Of a stretch of DNA of 64,000 nt, positions 2,403 through 44,932 are shown piece by piece. Numbering within the stretch: position 1 is the first letter of the stretch; the number at the start of each line of letters is the position of its first letter. Where the stretch lies: contig JBLDXI010000023.1 in NCBI GenBank assembly GCA_047495785.1, positions 992,001 to 1,056,000 on the forward strand. The letters run 5' to 3'. The notes below the pieces were generated by a model, which saw only the letters and a list, made by a program, of their open reading frames with translations, did no database searches and had not been told where the DNA came from. Made by a program: the position numbers and the translations under genes. The DNA is from Lepidodermella squamata. Taxonomy: Eukaryota > Animalia > Gastrotricha.

Positions 2403-5400
2403 TAGGAGCGGTGGTAGTAGCAGCAGTACTAGTAGTTGCGACACTAGTAGTAGTAGTAGTAGTAGTAGCAGTAGTAGTAGTAGTACCGGCACTAGGAGTA
2501 GTACTACTAGTGATTCCGACACCAGTCGTTGCTGGGGCATTGGTCGTTATCAAATAGAATGGCATCGGTTTAGCCGTAATAGCTCCAGCGGCTATTAGTG
2601 CGGATATAGCCTGAGTATTGCCGTATATTAGCGCTAAGTCAAGTGGGGAATAGCCTTCGTCATTCAGCACATTGAAATCAGCTCCAGCTGCAATCAACTC
2701 GGCCGCATTACTTGTGAATTCGCGAGCTGAGAGGATGTGCAGAAGCGTATCTCCCCTTCGGAGTTTTCGATTGATATCGTATCCCTTCTCGACTAGAAGC
2801 TTGGCCAAACCGTCAAAACTGCGGTATTTCGGAATAAAGGTCAGGCAAGTATCGTTGTTCTTGTTCTGGGAATTCACGTCCACTCCAGTGAAATTCGCAA
2901 ATCGCCTGACTCGGAAAAGAGGGAAGTCAGCATTCTTACAAGTCAACAAAAAGGCGTTATTCCCATCATTGTCTACAGCTGACAAATCCGCACCCGAATC
3001 CACGAGAAGATTGGCTACACTTTCCTTGCTTTCACTAGCTGCAATCATTAGCGGAGTTTTGCCAGTCGATTCTCGATCCTCTAGGCCAATGCCAGGGGTT
3101 GCGATTAATAATCTCGCTAGATTAACGTCATTTTCACGTGCAGCTAGATGTAGCAGTGTATAATTTGCATATCCGTATGAGGTTGAATTAATCCTGATTG
3201 CAGCATCGGCCCCTTTCGATATCAGATATTCATAGACTTGAACGCGATCTGGCGACTTCAAGTACATGGCTGCGACTACAAGTGGAGTCCTGCCTTCGGT
3301 ATCCTTGTCCGAAACAGAATTTCCAGCCTCCTCAACAGCGAATTTCACCACAGGGAGAGCAGGCATCTTCGAGATCCGGCAAGCCTCCGAAAAGATTCGA
3401 TCCAAGTTTTTGGAAGCTCCTTGCGAAACGAGAAATTTAACGATTTCAAGATTCGTTGCTGTAGCGTCGAGAATCGCCGTTCTCCCGTTCGCTTCCAAAT
3501 CGACATCTGCACCGAATTGCACGAGCAATTTAACCAAATCAAGGCGACCTTGTTCAGCTGCAAGCATTAGAGCAGATTTCTTAAATTTCGGGTGAATCGC
3601 ATTAGCATCGCCATCATTTTCGAGTAGAATCTGAAGCATTTCCAACGAAGCATTGGCAACACTTATAGCAGCAGCCACCACTGGGATCGGCTGGAAGAAA
3701 TCGCCGGTGTAGTAGTCGTTGTGCAGTTCTATTATGAGATCGTCCCCACGGGCTTGATTGAGTCGAATCATCTCGCGAACAGCAGTGATGTTCCCAGTAT
3801 TGACTTTTCCAGCAAATTCCTAGTGGGAACAATTTTGTAAATTCATAAATTTTTTAAACATTTTATTTAGAGGGTTTATCCTCAAGCTGGGGGTGCTCTA
3901 TTTTCTATTGTACTTTCACCCCGATATTTCGAATTGAAGGATCCGCAAATTTTAAGCAAATTTTAACATACCGAAATACGCCATTCATTCCGTACAGCTT
4001 TCACGGCTGATCGGGTAGTTGTGCTAGTCTTCGCTGCAGCAGTTGATCTTGCCTTGAAAATAGCTCCAACAATGGGCTGCAGACCATCATTAATTGCCTC
4101 GTCGCTTGGCGTTAATGGCCAAATTTTAGCGGAATTCATTGCCGCTGATGTCGTCGAAATTGTGGATGAACTCGCTGTTGTCGAAGTTACGGGACTGGTC
4201 GATGATCTCGTGACTAACTCACTGCCCAAGGCAGCACCTCGCCTTCTCAAATTTCCGATACTGAATTCGCCGTTAATCAATCTCGCGGCGTCCAAGGCAG
4301 TTTGGCCACTGTCATCAGTTGCATTTACATCAACGCCAAGATCTAGCAAGGCCACAAGAGTGTGCTCCCGATTTTTATCGCGAGCTGCGGACATGAGAGC
4401 GGTAATGCCCGAATAGCCCCTAAGGTTAAAATCGTAGCCTTTACTAGCCAGGTACTGCATAATTTCAACAAGATCCCAGTCGTTAACCTGCAAACCATTT
4501 CGCCACTGAAGGCGATAGTCGCAGGCTGCAGCTTTCGACCTTGAATTGACGTTATTTTGACCGATTTCGATGGCAAACTTGATAAATGTAAAAAGGGCCG
4601 AACCAGCACGATTAATTTGACAAGCTTGCAGCAACATATTATCACCTTCGTTATTACTCGCCAGCGCATCCGCTCCTAGGTCAATCAAATATTGGAGTAG
4701 ACCGAGGGAATACCCAGCCCTAGCCGCGATCAGCAAAGGCGTGTTGCCTCCATTATCCCTCGCATTAACATCCATCTTGAACTGTTCCACTAGTAATTTA
4801 GCAAAAGGCACGGGATCAATTGTGTCAACCGCGCAAAGTATGTGAAGGGCAGTTTGTCCGGCGGAGTTTCTGGAATCTGGTGATTCGAATGGCAGCAAGT
4901 AGTAAGCTAGCCGGAGATATTCTTGAGTGATTGGGCCGTCAAAAGCAACCATCAACGCCGTCTGGTTCTTTTGGTCTCGAACATCCGTCCTTGCTGCGTA
5001 CTTTTCAACGAGAAGTCTCGCTAGGTCCAGTCGGCCAACTCTTACTGCCCAGAGGAATGGAGTTTTTGAATCGTCCCTAGGACCGATATAATCCAAAAAA
5101 TTTTTTGCCTCGACATTCGCGCCATTTCGTAGTAGTAAGTCGACCATTTCGAAGCTCTGATTCGTTCGAATTGCATTTACCAAAGCCGGGGCACGGACTC
5201 CCGATCGGTATTTCGCCGTGGAATTTGCTTTACCAAGGCCTGAATTCAACATTTGACGAACAGTAGAGATTTGTCCCGACATAACAGCTTGGTTCAAAGC
5301 CTATATAAATGAACAGCTCAAAACGTCAAGACGCTAAAACATGTTCAAGATCTTACGTTGCCGTAATCGATCTCACTTGCGTGAATGATCACACCAGCGA

Positions 5401-5437
5401 AACATATTTCGAACAAAATTACGTAGATGGATATCAT
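2296..5437 (-). CDS. Secreted ankyrin-repeat protein, copy 1 (3 exons, 977 aa)
   Basis: Exons 5437-5357 (MISIYVILFEICFAGVIIHASEIDYGN, signal-peptide-like), 5300-3972 and 3819-2296. Both introns are GT-AG phase 0 (56 and 152 nt). Many TPLxxAA / GADxxxxD ankyrin motifs, an S/T-rich linker, a poly-Thr tail and C-terminal GGWPGWK. Confidence 0.9.
2366..2510. repeat. (TAG/ACT)n microsatellite encoding the poly-Thr tail of ankyrin copy 1
   Basis: Directly visible agt repeats, in frame with exon 3. Confidence 0.9.
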
Positions 5438-5509
5438 TTGACTTCCAGATGGATTTCTAGAGATTACAAAGAGAAATGTTAAAGAATGCTGAAATCAAAG
5501 AGACATTAA

Positions 5510-7640: not shown

Positions 7641-7678
7641 TCACTATTTATGCTGATAAAAATTTGTTTTTATGTGTA

Positions 7679-10156: not shown

Positions 10157-10344
10157 TGGAAAATTTGAAACAGCCAGCATTAAACTGCCTTTCCTTAATT
10201 GACAGCTATCTTTGGTTATGAACATTATTTGTAGAATCGAATTTAATTAATTAATTAAATTCGATTCTACAAATAATGTTCATAACCAAAGATAGCTGTC
10301 AATTAAGGAAAGGCAGTTTAATGCTGGCTGTTTCAAATTTTCCA
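10157..10344. repeat. Perfect 188-bp palindrome (94-bp arms, no spacer)
   Basis: Centre at 10250/10251 (atttaattaa|ttaattaaat). Covers the last codons, stop and 3' UTR of ankyrin copy 2. Confidence 0.92.
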
Positions 10345-13300
10345 TCCTGGCCAGCCTCCAAGACTGGGACTTGTCCCCTGCGTAATACCAAGCGTAGTAA
10401 CGAGACGAGTAGTAGTTGTACTAGAAGTTCCGACGCTAGTCGTTGTTGTAGCAGTGGTCGTTATCAAGTAAAACGGCATCGGTTTAGCCGTAACAGCTCC
10501 AGCGGCTTCGAGTGCGGCTATAGCCCGTGTATTGCTGTATATCAGCGCTAAATCAAGCGGAGAATAGCCTTCGTCATTCAGCGAATTGAAATTAGCTCCA
10601 GCTTCAATCAACTCGTTCACATTTAGTGTGAATTCTCGAGCTGAGAGGATGTGCGGAAGAGTATCTCCCCTGCGTAGTTTTCGATTGATATTGTACCCTT
10701 TTTGAACTAGAAGCTTGGCAAAACCGTAAAAATTGCGGTATTTTGGAAAAACGGTCAGGCACGTGTCGTTGTTTTTGTTTTGAGAATTCACATCCAGTCC
10801 AGTCAAATTTGCAAAGACCCTAACTCGGGAAAGAGCGAAGTCGGCATTCTTACAAGTCAACAAAAAGGCGTTATTCCCATCAATGTCAACAGCCGATAAA
10901 TCCGCACCTGAAGCGATGAGGAGATCAGCTACACTTTCCTTACTTTCACTGGCTGCAATCATTAGCGGAGTTTTACCAGTTGATTCTCGTTCTTCTAGGC
11001 CAATGCCAGGAGTTGCGATCAATAATCTCGCCAGATCAACGTCATCTACACGTGCAGCTAGATGTAGCAATGTATAATTTGTGTATCCGTATGAGGTTGA
11101 ATTAATCCTGATTGTAACATCGGCCCCTTTCGATATCAGATATTCGTAGACTTGAACGCGATCTGACGACTTTAAGTACATGGCTGCGGCTACAAGTGGA
11201 GTCCTGCCTTCGGTATCCTTGTCCGAAACAGAATTTCCAGCGACCTCAATGGCGAATTTCACCATTTGGAGAGCAGGAATCTGGGAAATCCGACAGGCCT
11301 CTAGAAGGATATGATCCACGTTTTTAGAAGCTCCCTGTGAAACCAGGAATTTCACAATTTCAAGATTCGTTGCCGTAGCGTCGAGAATTGCCGTTCTTCC
11401 GTTCGCTTCTAAATCGACATCTGCACCGAATTGCACGAGCAATTTAACCAAATCAAGGCGACCTTGTTCAGCTGCAAGCATTAGGGCGGATTTCTTGAAT
11501 TTCGGGTGAATCGCATTTGCATCGCCGTCATTTTCGAGTAGAATCTGAAGCATTTCTAACGAAGCATTGGCAACACTTATAACAGCAGCCACCACTGGGA
11601 TAGGTTTGTAGTAAGTTAAGGTCCCGCAACCAACGTAATCGTCGTGCTCCTCCATTATAAGAGCGTCCCCGCGGGCTTGATTGAGTCGAATCATTTCGCG
11701 AACAGCAGTAACGTTCCCAGTTGCGACTTTTCCGGTAAATTCCTAGTGAAAACAAAATGTAATCACTGGCGAAATGGGTGCAAGGTGCAAGTAAAAAATG
11801 TGTTAAATATAATCAAGGGGTATTAAGTTTGAGAGAGGCCTTACTCGCCTAGTAAAGGAAAATGTATTAGAATCAATATTGGTGAGTATAAAATTTCAGG
11901 AGGAACTGCTCTACGCCGACTAGAAATCGTGAAATCATAGAAATTAAGATCAACAATTTTCTGGTGCAATTTGAACTGGCAAAGATGCAATCTCTACAAT
12001 CATTCCTCGGCTGGAAACCAAATTGACGCCTGGGAATTTTCGCGCTTCCAGAATTTACCAAAAACCAAATTAATTGACAGGAATGAGTTGATTCCGTTGA
12101 AGGGAATTTAAAAGGTTATATAACGACAGCTTTTAGAAAAAGGTTCCCCCATCGATAAAGTAAACTATTACATCATATTTTTATATTGCACATTTTCCGT
12201 TATGCTGTTGTATCAACTAATTGTAACCCACCGAGATGAGCGATTCATTCCGCTCAGCTTTCACGGCTGATCGGGTAATTGTGCTAGTCTTCATTGCAAC
12301 GGTTGATCTTGCCTTGAAAATAGCTCCAACAATCGGCTTCAGACCATCATTAATTGCCTCGTCGCTAGGTGTCAATGGCCAAATCTTAGCTGAAGCTATT
12401 GCTGCTGATGTCGTCGAAAATGTGGAAGAACTCGTTGTTGTCGAAGTTACTGGACTGGTCGATGATCTCTTGACTAACTCACTGCCCAAGGCAGCGCCTC
12501 GTCTTCTCAAATTGCCGATACTGAATTCATCTTTCCACATTGTTGCGACGTCCAAGGCAGTTTGGCCCATGTCATTTGTTGCATTTACATCAACGCCAAG
12601 ATCGAGCAAGGCCAGAAGAGTATGCTCCCGATCTTTTGACAATGCTGCTGCGGACATTAGTGCGTTATAGCCCGAATAACCCCTAAGGTCGAAATTGTAG
12701 CCTTTACTAGCCAGGTACTGTATAATTTCAACCAAGCCCAAGTCACCCACCTGCCAACTATTTCGCCATTGAAGGCGATAGTCGCAAGGTGCAAATTTCG
12801 ACCTTGAATTAATGTCATTTTGTCCGATTTCGATGGCAAACTTGATAAACGTTAAGTGGACCGGGCTTGAAGGATCAATTCGACAAGCTTGAAGCAACAT
12901 ATTATCGCCTTCGTCATTACGAGCCTGCCTTTCGGCTCCTTGGTCGATCAAGTATTGAAGTAAACCAAGGGAATAGCCAGCCCTAGCCGCGAACAGCAAA
13001 GGCGTGTTGCCTTCCTTGTCCCTCGCATTGACATCCATCTTGAACTGCTCGACCAGTAATTTAGCAAACGGCACGGGATCAGCAGTGTCAACCCGGCAAA
13101 GTAAGTGAAGGGCAGTTTGTCCGGCGGAGCTTCTGGAATCTGGCGATTCGAATGGCAGCAAGTAGTAAACAAGACGGAGATATTCTTGAGTGATTGGGCC
13201 GTCAAAAGCAACCATCAACGCTGTTTGGCCCTTCTGGTCTCGAACGTCAGTCCTTGCTCTGTACTTTTCAACTAGGAGTCTCACTAGGTCCAGCCGGCCA

Positions 13301-13710
13301 TTTCTTGCTGCCCAGAGAAATGGAGATTCCGAATCAGCCCTGGTATCGATCAACTCCTCGACATTTTGACCGCTTTGCTGTTTGTAGGAGCCATTCGCAT
13401 TTGCGCCATTTTGTAGTAGCAGTTCCACCATTTCGGAGCTCTGATTCGTTCGAATTGCATTGACTAAAGCCGGTGCTCGGTTTCCTGGTCGGTAAACTGC
13501 CGGGGAATTTGCGTTAACAAGCCCCAAATTCAAAAGTTGCTGAACTGAAGAGATTTGTCCCGACATAACAGCTTGGTTGAAAGCCTAAATCGATCACTTA
13601 AAACCTGAAGAAACTAAATATGGCCAAGGTCTTACGCTGTCGTAATCGATCGCCCTTGCGTGAATGATCGCACCCGTGAAACATATTTCGAACAAAATTA
13701 CGTTGATCAT
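10333..13710 (-). CDS. Secreted ankyrin-repeat protein, copy 2 (3 exons, 945 aa)
   Basis: Exons 13710-13636 (MINVILFEICFTGAIIHARAIDYDS), 13584-12232 and 11742-10333. Same phase-0 GT-AG introns as copy 1. Ends GGWPGWKI. Confidence 0.9.
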
Positions 13711-16415: not shown

Positions 16416-19400
16416 CTAGTCGCGGGTTGTAGTTCCGACGCTAGTTGTAGCAGTGGTCGTCAAATAGAACGGCATCGGTTTAGCCGTAATAGCTCCAGCG
16501 GCTCTTAGTGCGGCTATAGCCCGTGTATTGCTGTATATCAGCGCTAAATCAAGCGGAGAGTAGCCTTCGTCATTTAGCGCATTGAAATTAGCTCCAGCTG
16601 CAATCAACTCGGCCACATTAAGTGTGACTTCTCGAGCTGAGAGGATGTGCAGAAGAGTATCTCCCTTGCGCAGTTTTCGATTGATATCGTACCCCTTTTG
16701 AACCAGAAACTTGGCAAAACCATCAAAGTCGTAGTATTTCAAAATAAGGGTCAGACACGTGTCGTTGTTCTTGTTCTGAGAATTCACGTCCACTCCAGTG
16801 AAATTTGCAAATAGCCAGGTCAGCGTGAGAAAGATGCTGTCATTCTCACAAGCCAACAAGAACGCGTTATTCCCATCTTTGTCAACAGCCGATAAGTCCG
16901 CACCCGAATCGACGAGAAGATTGGCAACCTTTGCCGCGCTTTCACTAGCTGCAATCATTAGTGGAGTTTTACCAGTTGATTCTCGTTCCTCTAGGCCAAT
17001 GCCAGGAGTCGCGATTAAAAATCTCGCCAGGTCTACGTCATTTTCACGTGCAGCTAGATGTAGCAATGTATAATTTGTGGATCGGTATTTGGTGAAAATA
17101 ATCCTGATTTTAACATCGGCCCCTTTCGATATCAGATATTCAAAGACTTGAACACGATCTGGCGACTTCAAGTAGACGGCTGCGATAACAAGTGGAGTCC
17201 TGCCTTCAGTATCCTTGTCCGAAACAGAATTTCCAGCCTCCTCAATAGCGAATTTCACCACAGGGAGAGCAGGAATCTTGGAAATCCGACATGCCTCTAG
17301 AAGGATATGATCCACGTTTTTAGAAGCTCCCTGTGAAACCAGGAATTTCACAATTTCAAGATTCGTTGCCGTAGCGTCGAGAATTGCCGTTCTTCCGTTC
17401 GCTTCTAAATCGACATCTGCTCCGAATCGCACGAGCAATTTAACCAGATCAATGCGACCTTGATCAGCTGCAAGCATTAGAGCAGATTTCTTGAACTTCG
17501 GGTGAATCGCATTTGCATCGCCGTCATTTTCGAGTAGAATCTGAAGCATTTCTAACGAAGCATTGGCAACACTTATAGCAGCAGCCACCACTGGGATCAC
17601 TGGGAAGTACTCGAAATACATGTGACCGTTCGACTGTTCGATTATAAGAGCGTCCCCGCGGGCTTGATTGAGTCGAATCATTTCACGAACAGCAGTGATG
17701 TTTCCAGCTTTGACTTTTTCAGCAAATTCCTAGCGAAGACACTATTTACACTTTCTTTTTTTATGCGCGTTACGCGAGAGTGGAAAAGATTGTGCCAAGC
17801 TATCACCGCAACATAGAGAAAAAATGACCAGAGTAAGCACTCAAGCTAAAATTGTGATCTGCGTTATTATAGCAGTGCTTTCTCAAAACGGATATCTCCG
17901 TTTTCCACCAAATTTTGCATGCCTATAGAACGCGAGCTGCTCTTTCACGTGGTAAAAGATTTGAGGTAGGCAATTGCTGCTCAGTCTTGATCTCATCAAA
18001 ATAAATGAAACCATGGTGAAAACGCGGTTTTTGTATCGCAACAACGGTTGGGTTGCCCACCTCAAATCTTATACCTCGTGAAAGAGCAGCTCGCGTTCTA
18101 TAGGCATGCAAATTTGGTGGAAAACGGAGATATCCTTTTTCAGACTAAGCCCCCCCCCCCCCCCCCCCCAGCTAATGTAACTGCCTTTTCATAACAACTA
18201 ATTGTAACCTACCGAGATAAACGATTCACTCCGCACAGCTTTCACAGCTGATCGAGTAGTTGTGCTGGTCTTCATTGCAACGGTTGATCTTGCCTTGAAA
18301 ATCGCTCCAACAATCGGCTGCAGACCATCATTGATTGCCTCGTCGCTAGGCGTTAAAGGCCACATTTTAGCGGAATTTCTTGCTGCTGATGTCGTCGAAA
18401 TTGTGGATGAACTCGTTGTTGTCGAAGTTACGGAACTGGTCGATGATCTCGTGACTAACTCACGGCCCAAGGCAGCACCTCGTCTTCTCAAATTGCCGAT
18501 ACTGAATTCATCTTTCAATATTTTCGATATGTCCAAAGCAGTTTCGCCTCTGTCATTTGTTGCGTTTACATCAACACCCAGATCGAGCAAGGCCACAAGA
18601 GTTCGCTCCCGATTCTTAGACGCTGCTGCAGACATGAGTGCAGCATAGCCCGCATGGGACCTAAGGTTGAAATCGTAGCCTTTACTAGCCAGATACTGCA
18701 TTATTTCAACAAGACCCATGTCGCTCACCTGCCCCCCACTTCGCCATTGAAGGCGATAGTCGCAGGCTGCAGCTTTCGACCTTGAATTGACGTCATTCTT
18801 TCCGATTTCGATTGCCAACTTGATAAAAGCTAAGTGGCCCAGCTCAGTATGATCAATTTGACAAGCTTGAAGCAACATATTATCACCTTCGTTATTACTC
18901 GCCAGCGCATCCGCTCCTAGGTCAATCAAATATTGGAGTAGACCGAGGGAATACCCAGTCCTAGCCGCGATCAGCAAAGGCGTGTTGCCTTCCTTGTCCC
19001 TCGCATTGACATCCATTTTGAACTGCTGGACCAGTAATTTAGCAAACGGCACGGGATCAGCAGTGTCAACCCGGCAAAGTAAGTGAAGGGCAGTTTGTCC
19101 GGCGGAGCTTCTGGAATCTGGCGATTCGAATGGCAGCAAGTAGTAAACAAGACGGAGATATTCTTGAGTGATTGGACCGTTAAAGGCAACCATCAACGCC
19201 GTCTGGTTCTTCTGGTCTCGAGCATCCGTCTTTGCTGCGTAATTTTCAACTAGGAGTCTCACTAGGTCCAGCCGGCCATTTCTTGCTGCCCAGAGAAATG
19301 GAGATTCTGAATCAGTTTCAATATTTAGGCCGTTTTGTAGTAGTAATTCGATCATTTCGTAGCTCTGATTTGTTCGAATTGCATTAACCAAAGCCGAGGG

Positions 19401-19667
19401 TCGGCTTTCTAATTGGTAAATTGTCGTGGAATTTGCGTTGACAAGGCCAGAATTTAACATTTGCCGCACGGTAGAAATTTGGCCCGACATAACAGCTTGG
19501 TTGAAAGCCTAAATCAGACACTAAGCACTTGTAGCCTGAAAGAAGCCAAAAAATGTGTGAGGTCTTACGCTGTCGTAATCGACCGCACTGTCGTAATTGC
19601 TCGTACTTACGTGAATGATCGCACCCGTGAAACATATTTCGAACAAAATTATGTAAATGGATATCAT
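16416..19667 (-). CDS. Secreted ankyrin-repeat protein, copy 3 (3 exons, 902 aa)
   Basis: Exons 19667-19569 (MISIYIILFEICFTGAIIHVSTSNYDSAVDYDS), 19508-18213 and 17729-16416. Short tail without the WPGW motif. Confidence 0.88.
17882..18143. mobile_element. MITE in intron 2 of ankyrin copy 3
   Basis: About 90-bp inverted arms ggatatctccgttttccaccaaa...gcatgcctatagaacgcgagctgctctttcacg and its reverse complement. Absent from the other copies. Confidence 0.8.
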
Positions 19668-28728: not shown

Positions 28729-31658
28729 CTAGTCGGGGGTTGTGGTCGTCAAATAAAACGGCATCGGTTTAGCCGTAATAGCTCCAGCGGCTTTTAGTGC
28801 GGCTATAGCCCGAGTATTGCCGTATATCAGCGCCAAATCAAGCGGAGCATAGCCTTCGTCATTCAGCGCATTTATATTAGCTCCGGCTTCAATCAACTCG
28901 ATCAAATCACTCGAGATTTCTCGGGCTGAGAGGATGTGCAGAAGAGTATCTCCCCTGCGGAGCTTTCGATTGATAACGTACCCCTTGTCAATTAGAAATT
29001 TGGCAAAACCATCGAAGTCGAAGTATTTCGAAATAAGGGTCAGACACGTGTCGTTGTTCTTGTTCTGAGAATTCACGTCCACTCCAGTGAAATTTGCAAA
29101 TAGCCAGGTCATCGTGAGAAAGATGCCGTCATTCTGACAAGCCAACAAGAACGCGTTATTCCCATCTTTGTCAACAGCCGATAAGTCCGCACCCGAATCG
29201 ACGAGAAGATTGGCAACATTCTCCGCGCTTTCACTAGCTGCAATCATTAACGGAGTTTTACCTGTTGATTCACGTTCTTCTAGGCCGATGTTAGCAGTTT
29301 TGATCAGCAATCTCGTCAGATCAACGTCATCTACACGAGCAGCTTGATGCAGTAATGTATAATTTGTGTATCTGTACGAGGTTGAATTAATCCTGATTGC
29401 AGCATCGGCCCCTTTCGATATCAGATATTCGTAGACTTGAACGCGATCTGGCGATTTCAAATAAAGTGCTGCGACTGCAAGTGGCGTCCTGCCTTCGGTA
29501 TCCTTGTCAGAAACAGAATTCCCAGCCTCCTCAATAGCGAATTTTACCACAGGGAGAGCAGGCATCTTAGAAATCCGGCAAGCCTCGAAAATTATTTGAT
29601 CCAAGTTTTTCGAAGCTCCTTGCGAAACGAGAAATTTAACGATTTCAAGATTCGTTGCCGTAGCGTCGAGAATCGCCGTTCTTCCGTTCGCTTCTAAATC
29701 GACATCTGCACCGAATTGCACGAGCAATTGGACTAGATCAAGGCGACCTTGTTCTGCGGCAAGCATTAGAGCGGATTTCTTGAACCCTGGATGAATCGCA
29801 TTTGCATCGCCATAATTTTCGAGTAGAATCTGTAGCATTTCCAACGAAGCATTGGCAACACTTAATGCAGCAGCCACCACTGGGATCGGTTGGTCGTAAA
29901 TTAAGGTCTCGCAACCTACGTAATCGTCGTGCTGTTCTATTATGAGATCGTCCCCGCGGGCTTGATTGAGCCGAATCATTTCGCGAACAGCAGTGATGTT
30001 CCCGGCTTTGACTTTTCCAGCAAATTCCTAGTGGAAAGAATAATTAATCTTGTTCGTGCCCTACGAGAGTGCTGTTGTGCCAAACTTTCCTCAGGTGTTC
30101 TGTTGTACTTTTTTGCCCGAATTTCAAACCAACGAGGTGGTTCCAACCCGGGTGGAGATAAGCTTCAAACTCAATTGTAACCTACCGAGATAAGCGATTC
30201 ACTCCGCACAGCTTTCACAGCTGATCGAGTAGTTGTGCTGGTCTTCATTGCAACGGTTGATCTTGCCTTGAAAATAGCTCCAACAATCGGCTGCAGACCA
30301 TCATTGATTGCCTCGTCGCTAGGCGTTAAAGGCCACATTTTAGCGGAATTTCTTGCTGCTGATGTCGTCGAAATTGCGGAAGAACTCGTTGTTGTCGAAG
30401 TTACGGGACTGGTCGATGATCTCTTGACTAACTCACGGCCCAAGGCAGCACCTCGTCTTCTCAAACTGCCGATACTGAATTCATCTTCCCACATTGTCGC
30501 GACGTCCAAGGCAGTTTCGCCGTCGTCATTCGTTGCATTTACATCAACTCCCAAATCGAGCAAGGCCACAAGAGTTTGCTGCCGATCTTTTGACGCTGCT
30601 GAAGACATAAGAGCGGTATAGCCCGCATCTTTAGCCCGAATGTTGAAATCGTAGCCTTTACTGGCTAAGTACTGCATAATTTCAACAAGAGCCCAGTCGC
30701 TCACCTGCCAACCATTTCGCCATTGAAGGCGATAGTCGCAGGCTGCAGCTTTCGACCTTGAATTAACGTCATTCTGTCCGATTTCAATGGCAAACTTGAT
30801 AAACGTTAAAAGGCCCGACCCAGGACGATTAATTTGACAAGCTTGAAGCAGCATATTATCACTTTGGTTATTTCGAGCCTGCGCATCCGCTCCTTGGTCG
30901 ATCAAATATTGGAGTAGACCGATGGAATACCCAGTCCTAGCCGCGATCAGCAAAGGCGTGTTGTCTTCCTTGTCTCTCGCATTAACATCCATTTTGAACT
31001 GTTCGACCAGTAATTTAGCAAAAGGCACGGGATCAATAGTGTCAACCGCGCAAAGTAAGTGAAGGGCCGTTTGTCCGGCGGAGTTTCTGGAATCCGGCGA
31101 TTCAAGTGGTAACAAGTAGTAAGCTAGTCGGAGATGTTCTTGAGTGATTGGGCCGTCAAAGGCAACCATCAACGCCGACTGGTTCTTCTGGTCTCGAAAG
31201 TCCGTCCTTGCTGCGTACTTTTCAACGAGAAGTCTCGCTAGGTCGAGCCGGCCATTTCTTGCAGCCCAGAGAAATGGAGTCTTTGAATCGTCTCTAGCGT
31301 TGAAGTTTTGGCCGCTTTGCTGTTTGTTGAAGCCATCGACATTTGCACCATTTCGTAGTAGTAATTCGACCATTTCGTAGCTCTGATTTGCTCGAATCGC
31401 ATTCACTAAAGCCGGGGCTCGGCTTCCTGGTTGGTAAATTGCCGTGGAATTTGCGTTCACAAGGCCCGAATTCAACATTTGCTTAACTGAAGAGATTTGG
31501 CCCGACATAACAGCTTGGTTGAAAGCCTAAATGAGCAACTTGAAACCTGAAGTAGCCAAACATGTTCAAGGTCTTACGCTGTCGTAATCGATCGCCCTTG
31601 CGTGAATGATTGCACCCAAGAAACATATTTCGAGCAAAAATATGTAGATGGTTATCAT
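28729..31658 (-). CDS. Secreted ankyrin-repeat protein, copy 5 (3 exons, 906 aa)
   Basis: Exons 31658-31578 (MITIYIFLLEICFLGAIIHARAIDYDS), 31526-30186 and 30027-28729. Short tail. Confidence 0.88.
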
Positions 31659-34339: not shown

Positions 34340-37214
34340 CTAGCCTATGAAGTCGGGCAGAGGACCACGAGGAAGTCTGTTGCTCAACAGCACGAAGGGC
34401 GAGCGCGGAGGGGGGCGGGCCATCAGGCGGACGCTCTCGAGGTCCTCGCGCAGCGGCAGGACAAACTGAGCGGCTTTGGCGACATAACGGCGCTGGCACT
34501 TTTCCAGAAACCGAGGGACGCTCGGGATGCGGCAACGAGATTCCAACTCCGACACGCGGACCCTGTCGTCCCGACGAATGTGGAGCATTGCACGCAGGCT
34601 ATCATTTTGGATGACTGCGAGACGATTAAGCTGTTGCTTCGAGGCGGTAGCCAGACAAATGGTCCCATAAGACCAGCACGAACGGACCAGAGTCAAGTAA
34701 AGGGTGCGGCGCCAGCGGCGCGACAGCCCAGGGGTGAACATGAGATGTTTGAAAAAACCCAGATTTCTGCGGCAACGGTCAGAGACCTTGTCCACATGAA
34801 CTTTCCACGTCAGTTTAGGGTCCAAGTGAACACCGAGAACTCGTAACGACTCGACTTGCGGAATTACGGCTCCGTTGAGCCTAACAGCAACGGACGCGTT
34901 ACCAAAGGGCATAACTTCGCTCTTCGCGGGATTAAACTTCTGGCGCCATTTCTTGGCCCAGTCGGAAATACGAGTGAGCTCCAATTGGAGGCGACGCTGA
35001 GCAGCAGGGAACGTGCCACCCTCGCCGACGACAGTTAGATCGTCCGCGTAGGCCTGCAGCAACGTGCCACCCACGCTTGGGGCGGACAGCAAATCGGCGG
35101 TGTACAGAATGTAGAGAAGCGGCGACAACGGGGAACCCTGCGGCACCCCGCAATGGACGACGACTTGACGACTCAGCGAGCCCGCCACGCGAGCCTGCAG
35201 ACGACGGTCGCGAAGATAGTCGGCCAGCCAGCCGACCAAATTTCGCGGGAGAGGCAGCTGGGCCAGCTTATGGACCAGCCCGGCGTGCCACACGGAATCG
35301 TAGGCCGCCTGAACATCCAAGCCGGCCACGACAGTCTTCTTGCGCAGGGAGCGGTTGACGTGGACGCGATGAACGATGCGAAGTGGGACATCGGGCGCGG
35401 AATGGTGCGGACGGAATGCAAACTGATTCTCAGGGAGAAGGTGTTGACTTTCGAGAAACTGGGTCATCCACCGAGCCACGATCGACTCCAGGAGCTTGGC
35501 GTCAGTCGGCAGCAAGGAGATGGGACGCTGTGACGAGACATGGTTCTGCGGCTTGCCGGCCTTTGGGATAGGCACAACCAACCGCTTCTTTCCACGCTTG
35601 AGGCACGTAGCGACTGCCAAGAGACATGTTGAACAGCCGACGAAGGTGGGTTTGCAGGACAGGGCCACCCCACTTCATGTAGATGTTTTGAATACCATCC
35701 AAGCCAGGGGCCTTGAAGGACTTCAAACGGCTAACAGCATCAGCGAGCATCCGTTGACTGACAGAAAACTCGCCGAGAGCGGGCAAGCGGATCACATCGG
35801 AAGCCTGAAGGTCAGGATCTGCAACGACATCGTCCTCGACTTGTTGCCACCACTGGCGAATGGCAGCGTCCCCATCGGGGTCGACGTAGGGCGACATCGG
35901 TTTGACGAAATGATCAAGCAGTGCATCAGCAAGGGCAGTAGAAGGCGGCAGGACACTGCCATCATCGAGCTTCATGTAGGTCAGGCGATCAACAGGGGTA
36001 GGGCGAAACTTATCGAGACGACGGAGGCGGGCATAAGCCTCTCGGTAGCGGTGCTGGAACGACAGAGCTTCAACATACCGCAGGTTGGAGATATCCCGCC
36101 GCAATTGCTGAGCCGCTTTCGCAGCGCGGAACTGGGCGTCCAAGGCGTTGATCCTATCGACAAGCCCGGCATCAACTCGATTGCCGAGCCCACGTTCAAG
36201 AATCCTCTTTCTTTCGAGCAGGCTACGCATGTCGCGGGTCATTGAAACTTTTCTCAACTGAGTGCGGTCGAGCAGAGGGACGTGAACACGGCGAGATTCG
36301 GCGATTGCCGCACCAACCTGGCGCCGATACGAGTCGATCCGAATCACTGGGTCGCCGACATTAGGCAGCGGGATTTCGGACAGCAGCCGGATCAGGGTAC
36401 GAGAGAATCCAAAACGATCGGCTCTGGAGATGTCGTAGCGAGGAGCAGGGTCCACGAGGTCGTAGACGTGAGCAGGGCCAGAGCCGGACGGAAGACGAAC
36501 CCTGACAGACGTGCAGAAGTGATCGCTGCTAAGTCGGTCGCCAACAGACACGCCACCATCGAGAAGGCGAAGCGCCGCGTCGTTGACAATCCAGATATCG
36601 AGCGTAGACAGGGTCTTGTGAGCTTTCGACAGGTGCGTGGGAGGCGAGGAGAGAACAGTCAGACCGAGACGGGTGACGAAATGATGTACGGAATAGCCGT
36701 GAGGGTTCCATAAATCGTGGGACTGTGAACCCCACAGTGGAGACTTGCCATTGAGATCCCCGCTAAAGATACAGGGGAGGCCGGAGGCGGAGGCCCCAGC
36801 GAACTCGGTTTCCAGGAAGCTGAGATCCAAGGACGACGTCGGCGGACAATAGCCGGTAAGAAGACGAACAACAGACGAGCCAGCGAAAGGGACAGCATCC
36901 AAAGCGAGCCACTCACTAAGCTTGCGACCAGTCAGAGCCAGCCGCCGCTCGGCGACCACGAGAGCGCCCTCCCGAACAAACAGAGCAGCGCCGCCACGAG
37001 CGCCGTTGAGCAACAGATCCTCGGAGTCCTGTACCCGATCACAACGAAAAATTGCATAATCCCTAGAGGTTACACGCAAAAGAGAGAAAAGAAAGGATTC
37101 ACTTATGAAAAGAGCAAAGGGTTTATAAGTCTCTAGCTGTTGACAAGTTTCAGCTTCCTTGCCGGGGAGGCCGCACGGATTCCATTGTAGTAGCGTACGC
37201 AGCGTATTAGCCAT
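34340..37214 (-). CDS. LINE ORF2, AP endonuclease plus reverse transcriptase, one frameshift near 35578
   Basis: Starts MANTLRTLLQWN at 37214. APE motifs SES, GGAA, GDLN and SDH; RT motifs KAPGLDGI, RPISLL, QGSPLSP and YADD. One extra G breaks WKEAV|VVPIPK. Confidence 0.88.
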
Positions 37215-38781
37215 TACGGGTCGAGCTGGTTTGTGGCGGCAGCGGGGAGGCGAAGAGCCGGTCGAATAAGCGGCCGACAGTGTCGAGTCGGCGCTCGAAA
37301 GCGGCTTCCATACGCTGGAACCGCTCTTCCATAAGACTAAAGAGCCGGGCGCCATCAGGCGACAGAAAGTGACCGCGGAGTGCAGGATTAACAGGCGGAG
37401 CAGCAGGAGGCACCCACGACGGAGAAGGGGATGGCCACGGAGCAGGCGTTGGTCCGCCGACAAAGTCACGAGTGGAGAGAAAGTGCGTGGGGCCACCCCG
37501 CAGGTGCTCGGGGACCTTCGCTTGTTGACGACGCTTTTCACGTTCGGCGGCTTTCGCTTCACGGGCGACGGCGATGGCACGGCGACGGGCCACCTCGTCA
37601 GCCTGGGCGGTCTTGAACGCAGGGCAGCCCCGCCACGAACCAGAATGATGAGGCTCACCGCCGCCACTGCAGTGGGGGCAACGACGATCTTCAGGCTCAG
37701 CGAGACAGGTGGAAATCGTGTGATCAGTCGCAGCACAGCGGCTGCAGCGTTGCGTGGTGTCCGGAGAACAGTCGACAGCGACATGGCCGTAAGCGGCGCA
37801 CTTCAGACAGGTAGGCGGGAGAGCCTTGCTTTTCAACTTGTGGACTTTAATGCGACGATTCAGAAACTTGACACCGTTAGCCATGGCATCCTCGTAATGC
37901 TCAGCCGTTCGAAAGACGAGCACCATCGGCGACGTCTGCTTACCAGGAAGCGGGGGAATCTCGCGGATTTCCTCGATATACTCGGGCCGGAAAAGGGGGC
38001 GCAGAGTATCGCCAGTGTAACAGGAGGGCAGGCGGTAGCATATGGCCGAGCGTTTGTCTTTCAAAATGCGATCTGATTCGGTCACAGTCGGGTCAGGCCG
38101 GCCCGGATAGTGAATGCGGAAGTCTGAGTCGCGAAACGCACCCTTAGGGAAGCCGGCACGCTTGAGTAGCTTGTCAGCGTCCGTCGCAGTGGCGCACTTC
38201 ACGCGGAGGCCGCCGCTGCTCATGACATCGACAGCGACGGGCGCCAGCCATGGCGCAACGCGGACCAACTCTGGCTCGAGCTCTCCACGAGTCATGCCAG
38301 TGACGCGGTCGATTATCACGACCTTGTAGTTGACAGGCGCCTCTTGAGGTCCAATAGACGGGTGGGGAGCAGATGTACGAGTCGGGGGCGGCGGCGGCGG
38401 CGGGTCTTCCTTGCGCGCCACTTTACGCTTTGGCGACGCTTGCTGCCACGGCTGATTCGACGCCCCACTTGACGACGGGGGTGGGGAGGACGGTGGACTG
38501 TCAACAGACATCTGAAGGTCACCGAACGAAGACAGGTGAGGAGGGGACTGCCCAGTCGGCGGGCAGGGAGACGACGGAACGGTGTCAGCATTCTCCGAGC
38601 GTAACTGCTGGATTAGCTGCATGACGAGAGCAACTTGATCGACCGTAAGATCGTCGACCCGCAGCTTCTTCGCTCGCTCTTCGACAGTCATTCCAAATGG
38701 CTTCTTCGCTGGTGTAGCCATACTCCAGTAAACTTCCTCAAAGCTGTGGCGCGATGGGAAGCGTCGAGTAAATATTATCAA
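37207..38781 (-). CDS. LINE ORF1, gag-like with three zinc knuckles
   Basis: CLKCAAYGHVAVDC, CSRCAATDHTISTC and CPHC...HSGSWRGC. The true start may be the internal MATPAKK. Confidence 0.88.
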   Translation of the reverse strand: MIIFTRRFPSRHSFEEVYWSMATPAKKPFGMTVEERAKKLRVDDLTVDQVALVMQLIQQLRSENADTVPSSPCPPTGQSPPHLSSFGDLQMSVDSPPSSPPPSSSGASNQPWQQASPKRKVARKEDPPPPPPPTRTSAPHPSIGPQEAPVNYKVVIIDRVTGMTRGELEPELVRVAPWLAPVAVDVMSSGGLRVKCATATDADKLLKRAGFPKGAFRDSDFRIHYPGRPDPTVTESDRILKDKRSAICYRLPSCYTGDTLRPLFRPEYIEEIREIPPLPGKQTSPMVLVFRTAEHYEDAMANGVKFLNRRIKVHKLKSKALPPTCLKCAAYGHVAVDCSPDTTQRCSRCAATDHTISTCLAEPEDRRCPHCSGGGEPHHSGSWRGCPAFKTAQADEVARRRAIAVAREAKAAEREKRRQQAKVPEHLRGGPTHFLSTRDFVGGPTPAPWPSPSPSWVPPAAPPVNPALRGHFLSPDGARLFSLMEERFQRMEAAFERRLDTVGRLFDRLFASPLPPQTSSTRNG

Positions 38782-41783: not shown

Positions 41784-44700
41784 TCAAGATGGACTATTCC
41801 ATCCTGGCCAGCTCCGGAGATTTGGGCTGGACCTTAGCAGCATTCCAACCGTACTTCTGACACCAGTTGTGGTTGTCGCAGTTGTGGTTGTCGCAGTGGT
41901 AGTCGTCAAATACAACGGCATCGGTTTAGCCGTAACAGCTCCAGCGGCTCTTAGCGCGGCTATAGCCCGAGTATTGCCGTATATCAACGCTAAATCAAGC
42001 GGAGCATAGCCTTCGTCATTCAGCGCATTAATATTAGCTCCAGCTTGAATCAACTCGCCAACATTTTTAGTGGTTTCTCGAGCTGAGAGTTTATGTAGTA
42101 CAGTATCTCCCCTGCGGAGTTTTCGATTGATATCGTACCCTTTTTGAACTAGAAACCTGGCAAAACCGTTGAACTCGTAGTATTTCCAAATAAGGGTCAG
42201 ACACGTGTCGTCGTTTTTGTTCTGAGAATTCACGTCCACTCCAGTGAAATTTGCAAATCGTCTGGCCCGCGTGAGAGACATGTCGTCATTCTTACAAGTC
42301 AACAAAAAGGCGTTATTCCCATCATTGTCAACAGCCGATACATCTGCACCATTATGGACGAGAATATCGACCACATTTTCCGAGGTTACACTAGCTGCAA
42401 TCATTAACGGAGTTTTACCAGTTGATTCTCGTTCTTCTAGGTCGATGCCGGCAGTTTTGATCAGTAATCTCGCCAGATCAACGTCATCATCACGTGCAGC
42501 AAGATGTAGCAATGTATAATTTGTGTAGTGGTATTCGGTTGAATTAATCCTGATTGTAACATCGGCCCCATTTGATATCAGATATTCATAGGCTTGAGCG
42601 CGATCTGACGACTTCAAGTACATGGCTGCGACTACAAGTGGGGTCCTGCCTTCGGTATCCTTGTCAGAAACAGAATTTCCAGCCTCCTCAATAGCGAATT
42701 TTACTACTGGGAGAGCAGGCATCTTGGAGATCCGACAGGCCTCCAAAAGGATTTGATCTACGTGTTTAGAAGCTCCCTGTGAAATCAGGAATTTAACGAT
42801 CTCAAGGTTCGTTGCCGTCGCGTCGAGAATCGCCGTTCTCCCGTTCGCTTCCAAATCGGCATCTGCACCGAATTGCACGAGTAATTCAACCAGATCAAGG
42901 CGATTTTGTTCAGCTGCGAGCATTAAAGCAGATTTCTTGAACTCTGGATGAATCGCATTCGCATCGCCATAATTTTCGAGTAGAATCTGAAGCATTTCCA
43001 ACGAAGCATTAGCAACACTTAAAGCAGCAATCACCATTGGGATCGGTTGGTCGTAAATTAAGGTCTCACAACCTACGTAATCGTCGTGCTGTTCAATTAT
43101 GAGATCGTCCCCGCGGGCTTGATTGAGTCGAATCATTTCGCGAACAGCAGTGATGTTCCCAGCTTTGACATGTCCTGCAAATCTCTGAAGATGCATAATA
43201 ATTAGGCCAAATAATTATTTTCAGTCCTACGCTAATAAAGGTGGAAAGGGCTGGTTGATGGTACTAAACGCTCTACTACGGTGGATCTCTGGTTAACTGC
43301 TCGAAATGGTTGAAATCAGTGTTCGCAGTTGGGTCCTCGAGTTAGGGGGTGTCCCGTTGCAACTTTTGCCCCATTTGTAGACAAACTGGTTCCCCTCGTC
43401 GATAAAGTCAACTTTGAATTTTAACCCACCGAGATAAGCGATTCATTCCGCACAGCTTTAACGACTGATCGAGTAGTAATGCTGGTCTTCATTGCAGCAG
43501 TTGATCTTGCCTTGAAAATAGCTCCAACAATGGGCTGCAGTCCATCATTTATTGCCTCGTCGCTGGGCGTCAATGGCCACATTTTAGCGGAAGTTATTGC
43601 TGCTGGTGTCGTCGAAATTGTGGATGAACCCCAAAATGTTGGTGGCGGACCGATGCGCCAGTTCGATGATCTCATGGCTAACTCACTGCCCAAGGCAGCA
43701 CCCCGTCTTCTCAAATTGCCGATGCTGAGTTCATCTTTCCACATTGTCGCGATGTCCAAGGCAGTTTCGCCCCGGTCATTTGTTGCATTGACATCAACAC
43801 CCAGATCGAGCAAGGCCGCAAGAGTATGCTCCCGATTATTGGACGCTGCTGCGGACATGAGAGCGGTATAGCCCGCATCTTTAGCCCGAATGTTGAAATC
43901 GTAGCCTTTACTGGCTAAGTACTGCATAATTTCAACAAGATCCCAGTCGTTGACCTGCGAACCACTTCTCATTTGGAGGCGATAGTCGCAGGCAGAAAAA
44001 TCAGACCTTGAATTGACGTCATTCTGTCCGATTTCGATTGCAAACTTGATAAATGCTAAATGACCCAACTCAGTACGATCAATCTGACAAGCTTGCAGCA
44101 ACATATTACCCCCTTCGTAATTTCTCGCCTGCGCATCGGCTCCTTGGTCGATCAAGTATTGAAGTAAATCGATGGAATACCCCGTCCTAGCCGCGATCAG
44201 CAAAGGCGTGTTGTCTTCCTTGTCTTTCGCATTGACATCCATTTTGAATTGTTCCACGAGTAATTTAGCGAAAGGCACGGGATCACTAGTGTAAACCCGA
44301 CAAAGAATATGTAGGGCAGTTTGTCCAAGCCAGTTTCTGGAATCAGGCGATTCGAATGGCAGCAAGTAGTAAGCTAACCGAAGATATTCTTGAGTGACTG
44401 GGCCGTCAAAGGCAACCATCAACGCCGTTCTGTTCTCCTGGTCTCGAACATCCGTCCTTGCTGCGTAATTTTCAACTAGCAGTCTCGCTAGGTCAAGCCG
44501 GCCACCTCTTGCTGCCCAGAGAAACGGAGTTTTTGAATCAGCGCTAACATCCATGCGCTCCACAACATTTTTACCGATTCGATACTCGGAGTAGCCATAA
44601 CTCCTAGCCTCAACATTGGCGCCATTTCGTAGTAGTAATTCGACCATTTCGTAGCTCTGATTTGTTCGAATTGCATTCACTAAAGCCGGGGCTCGGTTTC

Positions 44701-44932
44701 TTGGTCGGTAAACTGCCGTGGAATTTGCGTTAGCAAGGCCCGAATTTAACATTTGCCGAACGGTTGAAATTTGGCCTGACATAACAGCTTGGTTGAAAGC
44801 CTAAATGAACCACTTAAAACCTGAAGAAGCTATACACGTTCAAGCTCTTACGCTGTCGTAATCGATCGCCCTTGCGTAAATGATCGCAACCGCGGAACAT
44901 ATTTCGAACAAAATTACGTAAAGGGATATCAT
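41784..44932 (-). CDS. Secreted ankyrin-repeat protein, copy 6 (3 exons, 950 aa)
   Basis: Exons 44932-44852 (MISLYVILFEICSAVAIIYARAIDYDS), 44800-43430 and 43184-41784. Ends RSWPGWNSPS. Confidence 0.9.

Follow-up and report, generated by a model that had tools for sequence, protein, structure and literature searches.

Ankyrin (ANK) repeats normally form intracellular scaffolds, are unusual as domains of the secretory pathway, and are the basis of the engineered binders termed DARPins. To our knowledge, ANK proteins in nature are nearly always cytosolic, and variable families of them are rare. The latrotoxins, which are spider venom proteins, possess about 20 ANK repeats and an N-terminal wing/pore domain and have no classical leader. 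In the fungal NLR (STAND) proteins, hypervariable ANK, TPR, and WD repeats undergo recombination-driven shuffling, and diversifying selection has been reported; these repeats are near-identical within a gene, with few variable positions, and the proteins are cytosolic and contain NACHT/NB-ARC and effector domains (PMC4986451). A further, general class comprises invertebrate recognition or effector families in tandem arrays, diversified through duplication, conversion, and positive selection; such families, among them the bivalve C1q-domain genes (PMC6835236), combine tandem duplication and a probable secretory leader with variable surface loops on a conserved fold.

The tandem ANK family described here shares with DARPins and with natural concave-face binders, such as the membrane-binding domains of AnkR and AnkB, the ANK fold, with a conserved helix core, and with the bivalve genes tandem duplication, the probable leader, and variable loops on a constant fold. 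It resembles the fungal NLRs in that ANK repeats would serve as a natural variable recognition module shuffled by recombination, and the latrotoxins in that a long ANK solenoid dominates a large protein that may act extracellularly. In contrast to DARPins, the repeats of any single protein differ strongly from one another, many of them have inserts, and the protein consists of two solenoids, a mucin-like linker, and an N-terminal leader. It differs from fungal and animal NLRs in having no NACHT/NB-ARC domain detectable with Pfam and halves that are only 23% identical, and from the fungal proteins in that variation lies between paralogous genes and a leader peptide is present. Compared with the bivalve genes, it has an ANK scaffold with no lectin or C1q-type domain, six members, and weakly supported selection; the wing/helical-bundle domain of latrotoxins and any specific sequence similarity to them are absent.

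Organization of the tandem array

Within the window (the whole stretch of 64,000 nucleotides that was analyzed), six intact paralogous ANK genes occupy positions 2296 to 45075 of the minus strand, which corrects the span of 3600 to 44720 given in the first-pass annotation. Each gene has three exons coding for a product of about 900 to 980 aa; the open reading frames are intact in all six copies, and the splice junctions of all six spliced models are GT..AG and phase 0.

2296..5437, minus strand: u1, exons 5437-5357, 5300-3972, and 3819-2296; 977 aa, spliced model
10333..13710, minus strand: u2, exons 13710-13636, 13584-12232, and 11742-10333; 945 aa, Pfam Ank matches in sister copies
16416..19667, minus strand: u3, exons 19667-19569, 19508-18213, and 17729-16416; 902 aa
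22695..25602, minus strand: u4, exon 1 with its end at 25522, exon 2 at 25471-24191, and exon 3 at 24032-22695; 899 aa with the conserved ATG taken as the start
28729..31658, minus strand: u5, exons 31658-31578, 31526-30186, and 30027-28729; 906 aa
41784..44932, minus strand: u6, exons 44932-44852, 44800-43430, and 43184-41784; 950 aa, Pfam matches and an AlphaFold2 (AF2) model of exon 2

The two alternating types of open reading frame are exons 2 and 3, which follow a short exon 1. The splice donor and acceptor that link them are conserved and keep phase 0, on which grounds we rejected the option that the two types are separate genes. A pseudogene or transposable element-derived origin of the frames was likewise rejected, given the intactness of 6/6 copies and purifying selection. 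Every coding-sequence indel among the copies is in frame, with a length that is a multiple of three. The tail of u1 includes a long poly-Thr stretch encoded by (ACT)n at 2364-2507, which TRF reports as a period-3 array. BLAST of the whole unit against the window recovered no partial cassettes beyond the six copies, and with all six complete, the locus lacks the germline layout of somatically assembled, VLR-like repeat receptors, i.e., an incomplete gene with donor cassettes.

The sole conserved noncoding block contains a 29-nt motif, present once per gene about 100 to 350 nt upstream of each start codon and matched six times at ≤3 mismatches against an expectation of 0; it is a candidate for a shared cis-regulatory element. 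The spacing between u5 and u6 is wider because a non-LTR retrotransposon has inserted between them; this element lies outside the ANK family, and its GC content is 54 to 66%, versus about 40% in its flanks.

45047..45075, minus strand: 29-nt upstream motif CTTTGGCAAACCTGGATGACCACGCTCGG, u6 site
5759-5787, 14014-14042, 19776-19804, 25717-25745, and 31755-31783: the other sites of the 29-nt motif
34340..38781, minus strand: GC-rich non-LTR retrotransposon, Pfam RVT_1 and Exo_endo_phos_2

Elsewhere in the window, a class C GPCR open reading frame returned no matches in a homology search, and an nAChR-like frame returned one, at 30% identity; the only matches from PDB searches were a protease of the pepsin type and a Cys-loop channel of the metazoan type. 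Rfam and tRNA scans of the window were empty.

A double ankyrin solenoid with a hydrophobic leader

From the N to the C terminus, the products display a hydrophobic leader, a first set of about 10 ANK repeats, a linker that is rich in Ser/Thr and contains an invariant peptide, a second set of about 12 repeats, and a Thr-rich tail. The landmarks are given for u6.

44852..44932, minus strand: exon 1, hydrophobic leader MISLYVILFEICSAVAIIYA followed by RAIDYDS; conserved in 6/6 copies
44530..44620 (approximate), minus strand: A1/A2 length-variable β-hairpin, with in-frame indels only
43430..43640 (approximate), minus strand: linker and near-invariant peptide WPLTPSDEAINDGL.PIVGAIFKARST, alignment columns 411-492

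The ankyrin scaffold read from the sequence by the first-pass annotation is borne out at the level of both profiles and fold. Ank_2, Ank, Ank_3, Ank_4, and Ank_5 score far over the Pfam cutoff in both halves (Ank_2 E values range from 3e-34 to 5e-44; in u3 they are 2.8e-33 and 4.6e-44), no domain other than Ank was found by Pfam in either large exon, and about 22 repeats could be placed in register. The AF2 models display helix pairs along their entire length, and in Foldseek searches, the second-half model matches 12-repeat AnkB/AnkR solenoids and extended DARPins with TM scores of 0.55 to 0.62, the specific superpositions being with AnkB R13-24, AnkR D34, and extended DARPins. The two ANK halves align end to end (23% identity, E value of 1e-16); this colinearity marks the second solenoid, as read from the alignment, as an old internal duplication of the first. 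The mucin-like linker includes the invariant peptide, which is about 30 aa long, and extends to the donor site of exon 2; nucleotide identity in the linker reaches 0.95, and its dS (0.13 to 0.26) is below that of most of the sequence coding for ANK repeats. We considered a transmembrane segment within the conserved peptide and rejected it, as the hydrophobic run there is too short.

Indels in exon 1 preserve the frame (-6 and +18 nt), whereas those in the following intron of 50 to 60 nt do not. The leader has a mean Kyte-Doolittle value of about 2 over residues 2 to 20, and the same hydropathy analysis detected no further transmembrane-like segments in the protein. Its -3/-1 pattern is I-H-A ahead of R, with a small residue at -1. 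It is a probable signal peptide that would be cleaved at this point, and together with the mucin-like stretches, which may be glycosylated, it points to a putative extracellular location. Enrichment of N-glycosylation sequons had been entertained as support for secretion and was dropped, there being no such enrichment in the proteins.

The leader, the mucin-like regions, the tandem amplification, and the fast-evolving loops might also befit a family of secreted effectors, adhesives, or toxin-like proteins directed against prey, host, or symbiont, with the loops diversified by an arms race with foreign targets. Large secreted ANK proteins are known in venoms, and δ-latroinsectotoxin is among the Foldseek matches, at rank 49. 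However, this match covers the ANK region only, the similarity to latrotoxins is that of generic ANK repeats, and Pfam detected no non-ANK toxin or enzymatic domain, making such a role decidedly improbable.

Searches for relatives retrieved generic ANK proteins only: those started with the u3 exon 2 protein gave identities of no more than 38%, and an exhaustive search of representatives placed giant multi-ANK proteins on top, with generic matches of 25 to 43% identity over the repeats. One match of 959 aa (P0124) was considered as a relative and rejected as generic, at 25 to 28% identity. Two metagenome scans yielded no relatives, and none was found in 5.8 billion clusters at 90% identity plus 1.84 billion representatives at 50% identity. 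The absence of a relative from these collections suggests that the family marks an unsampled lineage. Our literature searches did not turn up any published secreted family of tandem ANK genes like this one.

Placement of variation on the scaffold

The strings on which the first-pass annotation had based its picture of an invariant framework, including ASLEMLQILLEN, NSVSDKDTEGRTPL, and WPLTPSDEAINDGL, all occur in the translations of the open reading frames and in the alignment, and so do the GAN...DS(K/E)(T/S)P loop, in its six variants of differing length, and the variable patches quoted there. Quantification upholds the picture: 537 of the 849 ungapped ANK/linker columns (63%) are invariant, 55% of the amino acid divergence falls in the top 15% of columns, and variation is concentrated in about 13 patches. 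Binned by 10 columns, the alignment has a dispersion index of 1.04; shuffled alignments give 0.375 (maximum, 0.65; P = 0.0002 with 5,000 shuffles). The patches correspond to the β-hairpin tips, the end of helix 1, and the helix 1-helix 2 turn, and many repeats bear family-specific inserts at the hairpin tips or in that turn. The A1/A2 hairpin insert measures 0 aa in u3 and u4, 11 aa in u1, 14 aa in u5, 18 aa in u2, and 22 aa, the longest, in u6; u4, which like u3 has no long insert here, carries the residues GY as an insert in repeat B9. In the variable loops, the A1/A2 hairpin among them, the AF2 models have low confidence (pLDDT below 50).

The description of the loops as aromatic rich also holds. 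In each copy, Tyr plus Trp make up 8 to 14% of patch residues versus 3 to 4% at other non-core ANK positions (Fisher P values of 0.025 to 1.5e-5), which amounts to about 1.7 times the base-composition expectation of 5.5% and 2.5 to 4 times the level at other exposed positions.

The proposed confinement of variation to a concave, DARPin-like binding face is not what we observed. With surfaces assigned by repeat register and a published classification of positions (PMC8415598), 80 of 160 concave columns (50%) and 88 of 195 convex columns (45%) are variable (P = 0.39). The fractions variable at DARPin positions 2, 3, 5, 13, 14, and 33 are 0.63, 0.60, 0.40, 0.59, 0.48, and 0.25, respectively, and those at positions 15, 16, 17, 18, and 21 are 0.57, 0.55, 0.68, 0.50, and 0.50. 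Thus, positions 2, 3, 13, and 14 are among the more variable in this family too, whereas positions 5 and 33 do not stand out, and variation extends to 15 to 18, 21, and the inserted helix 1-helix 2 turns instead of being limited to the six positions diversified in DARPins. By surface class, the ω values are 0.26 for the core, 0.29 for the basal surface, 0.59 for the concave face, 0.42 for the convex face, and 1.05 for the turn inserts. The suggestion that the patches lie on ligand-binding surfaces stands in part: the β-hairpin tips are variable and the core and basal surface are spared, but the convex face varies about as much as the concave one.

Selection, conversion, and the meaning of the loops

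Pairwise comparisons among the six copies gave dN/dS ratios of 0.26 to 0.42 at dS values of 0.25 to 0.38; framework ω is 0.25 to 0.31, and it is 0.31 outside the patches. Diversifying selection, for which the first-pass annotation expected dN/dS above 1 in the patches, fares less well there: the pooled patches reach 0.72 by the Nei-Gojobori (NG86) method (95% CI, 0.56 to 0.94) and 0.90 to 0.98 by maximum likelihood, the latter not different from 1, although the patches had been picked for variability, an ascertainment that favors high dN. In a scan with 30-codon sliding windows over the ANK domains and the linker, dN/dS never exceeded 1. As the patch-wide ratio is not above 1, most of the variation is compatible with relaxed constraint, and in its strict form this explanation would hold that floppy, unimportant loops merely drift between redundant or subfunctionalized paralogues, with any selected class being an artifact of gene conversion, multinucleotide changes, or local misalignment. 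The low pLDDT of the patches and the equal variability of the concave and convex faces agree with such drift.

What survives of the selection proposal is an apparent small class of codons with an ω of about 4. In site models run on the six sequences, a sample of little power in which conversion tracts are present, in a purpose-written maximum-likelihood implementation rather than PAML or HyPhy, the M1a/M2a comparison gave a 2ΔlnL of 24.3 (P = 5e-6; ω2 of 4.3 for 3.2% of codons), M7/M8 gave 28.8 (ω of 3.8 for 4.1% of codons under M8), and M8a/M8 gave 26.5. Contrary to an artifact, the likelihood ratio persists with a star tree (31.8) and when columns next to gaps are removed (25.7); it also holds when each of six segments has its own tree (summed 2ΔlnL of 29.8, df = 12, P = 0.003). 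Several flagged codons have 4 or 5 different residues across the six copies, drift alone does not predict the excess of Tyr and Trp, and the basal surface is solvent exposed yet as conserved as the core, so that exposure alone cannot explain where variation is placed. The signal comes mostly from the second ANK domain (the first alone gives P = 0.16), and the posterior exceeds 0.95 at only two sites, both on the outer helix.

Gene conversion bears on these tests. Conversion tracts are present among the copies, two-nucleotide dimorphisms that create double-hit codons are shuffled among them, and both confound and inflate tree-based site tests, in keeping with the artifact explanation. The dS of the patches (0.48; CI, 0.36 to 0.59) is higher than that of the framework (0.30; CI, 0.27 to 0.33), which fits conversion homogenizing the framework more than the patches. 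Taken together, the evidence that selection drives the loop variation is modest, and we regard relaxed constraint as the sole cause as possible but doubtful.

The first-pass annotation had gone further, to an antibody-like germline repertoire; in its full form, this would be a secreted immune repertoire under pathogen-driven selection with a DARPin-like concave paratope. A probable signal peptide together with mucin-like stalks, the tandem arrangement of copies shuffled by conversion, loops rich in Tyr and Trp as in antibody CDRs, and the codon class with elevated ω would all suit such a role. Set against these are the presence of only six copies, a positional pattern unlike that of DARPins, a patch-wide ω at or below 1, and the lack of any immune-type signaling or effector domain in the window; moreover, secretory-pathway ANK domains are unusual, and secretion is putative here. 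We consider this role very unlikely, and the present evidence describes fast-evolving loops on a constrained scaffold and falls short of demonstrating an immune repertoire.

The explanation we favor, at about even odds (a probability of roughly 0.5), is that at least six functional paralogues, in a tandem array specific to this lineage, code for binding proteins whose specificities have diverged via their loops. The copies have reached a dS of about 0.3 while purifying selection held the fold, with change tolerated or favored only within the approximately 13 surface patches. These evolve on average at a near-neutral rate, with 3 to 4% of codons appearing positively selected, and short gene conversion tracts shuffle segments among copies. 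The conserved solenoid would display two rows of loops, and differences between loops may translate into differing ligand preferences. A family with a leader of secretory type, mucin-like stalks, and two ANK solenoids, whose paralogues are distinguished chiefly by aromatic-rich loops, would constitute a natural experiment in ANK-based recognition; it also points to the ridge of helix 1-helix 2 turns as a second variable surface, one unused in DARPin libraries.

A broader proposition, which we judge unlikely, is that an animal lineage has moved the ANK scaffold to the secretory pathway as an extracellular recognition repertoire of tandem, conversion-shuffled, double-solenoid, mucin-stalked proteins with Tyr/Trp-rich loops. 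If true, this repertoire would be the ANK counterpart of the LRR- and Ig-based innate receptor families.

Organization of the array and its surroundings

The window is eukaryotic DNA with a GC content of about 43%. Searching it by BLAST with one unit revealed six homologous units on the minus strand (2296-45075), each made up of two coding blocks with 81-87% nucleotide identity; the inter-unit DNA does not align between units. The ORFs and variable patches described in the first-pass annotation are confirmed, but its span of 3600-44720 is corrected to these coordinates and its gene structure is revised. Two alternating ORF types (A, starting MSGQIS; B, starting MIRLNQ) as separate genes are ruled out by a conserved phase-0 donor and acceptor: the donor (..ATCTCG/GTGGGT) closes the A block at its 3' end, and the acceptor (..CACTAG/GAATTT) opens the B block at its 5' end, 48 nt before the first ATG of B. 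Between donor and acceptor lies a spacer of 152-489 nt that shows no conservation and carries many indels not divisible by three. Located 5' of the A block are an acceptor (TTTAG/G), an intron of 50-60 nt with a GTAAGA donor and, further upstream, a short first exon coding for MISIYVILFEICFTGAIIHA/RAIDYDS, whose indels among copies preserve the reading frame (-6, +18 nt), unlike those of the intron that follows. The spliced models are intact in all six copies (u1 to u6, numbered along the window; 899-977 aa), and about 250 nt 3' of the stop codon there is an AATAAA signal. Intron 2 of u3 contains an inverted repeat of about 260 nt with a poly-G run (17881-18144), which looks like a small foldback or MITE-type insertion and in part accounts for the greater length of that intron (483 versus about 155 nt).

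Features of the array and its flanks
5759-5787, 14014-14042, 19776-19804, 25717-25745, 31755-31783 and 45047-45075; minus; 29-nt motif (CTTTGGCAAACCTGGATGACCACGCTCGG, 0-2 mismatches)
2364-2507; (ACT)n array, about 40 copies long, coding for the poly-Thr tail of u1
28639-28717; perfect 12-nt repeat, 6.6 copies, directly 3' of the u5 stop codon
About 34340-38781; minus; GC-rich (54-66%; flanks 40%) non-LTR retrotransposon (LINE)
40028-40735; minus; ORF with a weak match, just under the Pfam cut-off, to DDE_3 (Tc1/mariner-type transposase)
45534-46654; minus; pepsin-type aspartic protease, immediately upstream of the array
49215-50174; minus; nicotinic-receptor-like Cys-loop subunit (C-x13-C, FPFD; best PDB matches, alpha-7 nAChR)
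50222-50623; minus; Ser/Thr/Pro-rich ORF, just upstream of the Cys-loop channel exon
55680-58058; plus; class C (GABA-B/mGluR-like) GPCR with a clear signal peptide, ANF_receptor domain and start of the 7TM region

Each of the six genes is preceded by one copy of the 29-nt motif, which is conserved beyond the level of the coding sequence and probably represents a promoter or enhancer element that the genes have in common; a module of about 190 nt around it is duplicated in u1, u2, and u5. In the LINE, ORF1 is gag-like and carries CCHC knuckles, and a frameshift divides ORF2 (endonuclease part, 35502-37784; RT part, 34340-35668); no poly-A tail is evident at the 3' end of the element. The DDE_3 ORF would be a second transposon remnant between u5 and u6, and the wider spacing of these genes is attributable to the two insertions. 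The protease, with its DSG and DTG motifs, occupies two overlapping ORFs, which implies a frameshift or a short intron near 46013-46094. The Ser/Thr/Pro-rich ORF may be another channel exon or a separate mucin-like gene, the 7TM region of the GPCR carries on into a second ORF (57522-58058), and a PAN-domain ORF is also among the neighbors. Taken together, these genes indicate that the DNA comes from an animal.

Only generic ankyrin-repeat (ANK) proteins were retrieved as relatives of the family, both by a length-limited protein search and by an exhaustive search of 1.84 billion representatives (best same-sized match, 25-28% identical), and two metagenome scans yielded no members. The neighboring genes are nearly as isolated: the channel has a single match, anonymous and 30% identical, in a 5.8-billion-protein collection, and a word-indexed protein search detected no homologue of the GPCR. 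The source lineage is therefore poorly sampled.

Protein architecture and placement of the variable patches

Pfam searches returned ankyrin families only, far above threshold, in both large exons, and about 22 repeats could be put in register, A0-A9 in the exon 2 half (domain A) and B0-B11 in the exon 3 half (domain B). The AF2 models have helix pairs throughout (pLDDT averages 61 over exon 2 and 76 over exon 3), that of exon 3 matching AnkB R13-24, AnkR D34, and extended DARPins with TM scores of 0.55-0.62. Confidence is low in the linker and the variable loops. Low confidence in the loops is explained by pure relaxation of constraint in floppy loops, the main rival to a reading of the paralogues as differing in their binding loops. 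The two halves align colinearly, atypical repeats included (23% identity, E 1e-16); hence, the gene arose by an old internal duplication, the duplicated module consisting of ANK repeats with a Ser/Thr-rich stretch behind them. A linker rich in Ser and Thr separates the halves, together with a nearly invariant peptide (WPLTPSDEAINDGL.PIVGAIFKARST). The C terminus is Thr rich and is enlarged in u1 by the (ACT)n microsatellite; the tails vary in length and frame, three copies ending in ..SPSLGGWPGW.. and three stopping earlier. The leader is hydrophobic (Kyte-Doolittle value of about 2 over 19 residues) with a small residue at -1 and is taken to be a probable signal peptide. No further TM-like segment was found in these proteins, and N-glycosylation sequons are not enriched.

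All of the variable strings quoted in the first-pass annotation are present. Of the 849 ungapped columns of the ANK/linker alignment, 537 are invariant across the six copies, and divergence is significantly clustered (dispersion of 1.04 versus 0.375 in shuffles, p=0.0002) in about 13 patches, the five already noticed and eight more. The insert in the A1/A2 hairpin ranges from 0 to 22 residues; its longer forms are mutually homologous, and u3 and u4 have a clean 66-nt deletion. The patches were rightly described as aromatic rich: Tyr plus Trp make up 8-14% per copy versus 3-4% at the remaining non-core ANK positions (Fisher p from 0.025 to 1.5e-5), with 5.5% expected from base composition. Relaxed constraint leaves this enrichment unexplained.

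Variability is highest at DARPin-numbered positions 1-4, 13-18, and 21, plus inserts, and lowest at 7-9, 11, 19, 22-24, and 27-29. With the surface classes of Utges et al. (PMC8415598), moved by two positions into DARPin numbering, omega is 0.26 for core, 0.29 for basal, 0.59 for concave, and 0.42 for convex positions, 1.05 for helix1-helix2 turn inserts, and 0.46 for hairpin inserts. An exposed basal face conserved as strongly as the core is likewise not explained by relaxation. The proposed confinement of variation to a DARPin-like binding surface does not hold, as it extends beyond the DARPin paratope, with concave (80/160) and convex (88/195) columns about equally variable (p 0.39). Of the 18 codons with P(omega>1) >0.5, 6 are concave, 5 are convex, 4 lie in turn inserts, 2 in hairpin inserts, and 1 in the core; the strongest sites are at the start of the outer helix of repeat B10. 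By these rates and counts, variation shuns the core and basal face and gathers in two loop rows, one at the hairpin tips and the other along the helix1-helix2 turn ridge. In each domain, the repeats with variable turn patches are consecutive and C-terminal (A6-A9 and B7-B10), so that these patches would form a contiguous ridge.

Selection and exchange between copies

Pairwise dN/dS over whole genes is 0.26-0.42 (dS, 0.25-0.38). Site models were fitted to 874 ungapped codons of the six copies with a purpose-written Goldman-Yang codon likelihood program (not PAML) and F3x4 frequencies. M0 gave an omega of 0.42, and models with positive selection were favored in M1a versus M2a (2dlnL 24.3, p 5e-6; omega2 of 4.3 for 3.2% of codons), M7 versus M8 (28.8), and M8a versus M8 (26.5; omega of 3.8 for 4.1% of codons), as well as with a star tree (31.8), with gap-adjacent columns taken out (25.7), and with six segments each given its own tree (sum of 29.8, df 12, p 0.003). 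This signal is weakened on four counts: its main source is the second domain (21.1, p 3e-5; first domain alone, 3.7, p 0.16); the posterior exceeds 0.95 in two codons only; the segment trees are mutually discordant and the gene tree has a star-like shape; and a GENECONV-style permutation test detected matching runs of 76-144 nt in four copy pairs (p<=0.0005), with several flagged codons, among them those at columns 201 and 301, being two-nucleotide dimorphisms mosaic across copies, which tree-based tests count repeatedly.

The expectation of a dN/dS above 1 in the patches is not borne out: pooled NG86 estimates are 0.72 (CI 0.56-0.94) versus 0.25 elsewhere, and the ML omega of 0.90-0.98, versus 0.31 elsewhere, is not different from 1. 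Thus, even in patches that had been chosen for variability, dN/dS is not above neutrality. These average rates are as relaxed constraint would have them; the multi-allelic codons are left unexplained by it. Among 30-codon windows, dN/dS rises above 1 only over the exon 1 leader (1.32), where dS is very low, and never within the ANK domains or linker. Patch dS (0.48) exceeds that of the framework (0.30) with non-overlapping intervals, which fits homogenization of the framework by conversion and could also reflect local misalignment.

The dimorphisms at columns 301-303 and 201 (in u3, about 18600 and 18900) are two-state and mosaic or alternating along the array, GCT/TTT alternating from u1 to u6 and GCG/CGG grouping u1 and u5 against the other copies, a pattern suggesting either old alleles that conversion has shuffled or the duplication of two genes as one unit. 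Separately, dS is 0.09 in exon 1 (u6: 44852-44932), markedly below most ANK-coding sequence (mostly 0.3-0.5), and is likewise low (0.13-0.26) from the end of domain A through the linker to the invariant peptide (u6: about 43430-43750), which hints at nucleotide-level constraint or recent homogenization of exon 1 and the end of exon 2.

Interpretation of the family

The conserved scaffold and its patches thus stand as first observed, whereas the interpretation drawn from them is supported in part only. An antibody-like immune repertoire, as originally envisaged, and an effector or toxin family are possible but unlikely readings. The best-supported reading of the sequence is that the six genes constitute a lineage-specific tandem family of large, probably secreted two-solenoid proteins, the paralogues of which have diverged in their binding loops. 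The loops evolve at an approximately neutral rate overall, some of their codons are probably under positive selection, and gene conversion exchanges sequence between copies. The products would be ANK proteins with a predicted binding function, here combining a secretory-type leader, mucin-like stalks, a double solenoid, and rows of variable loops.
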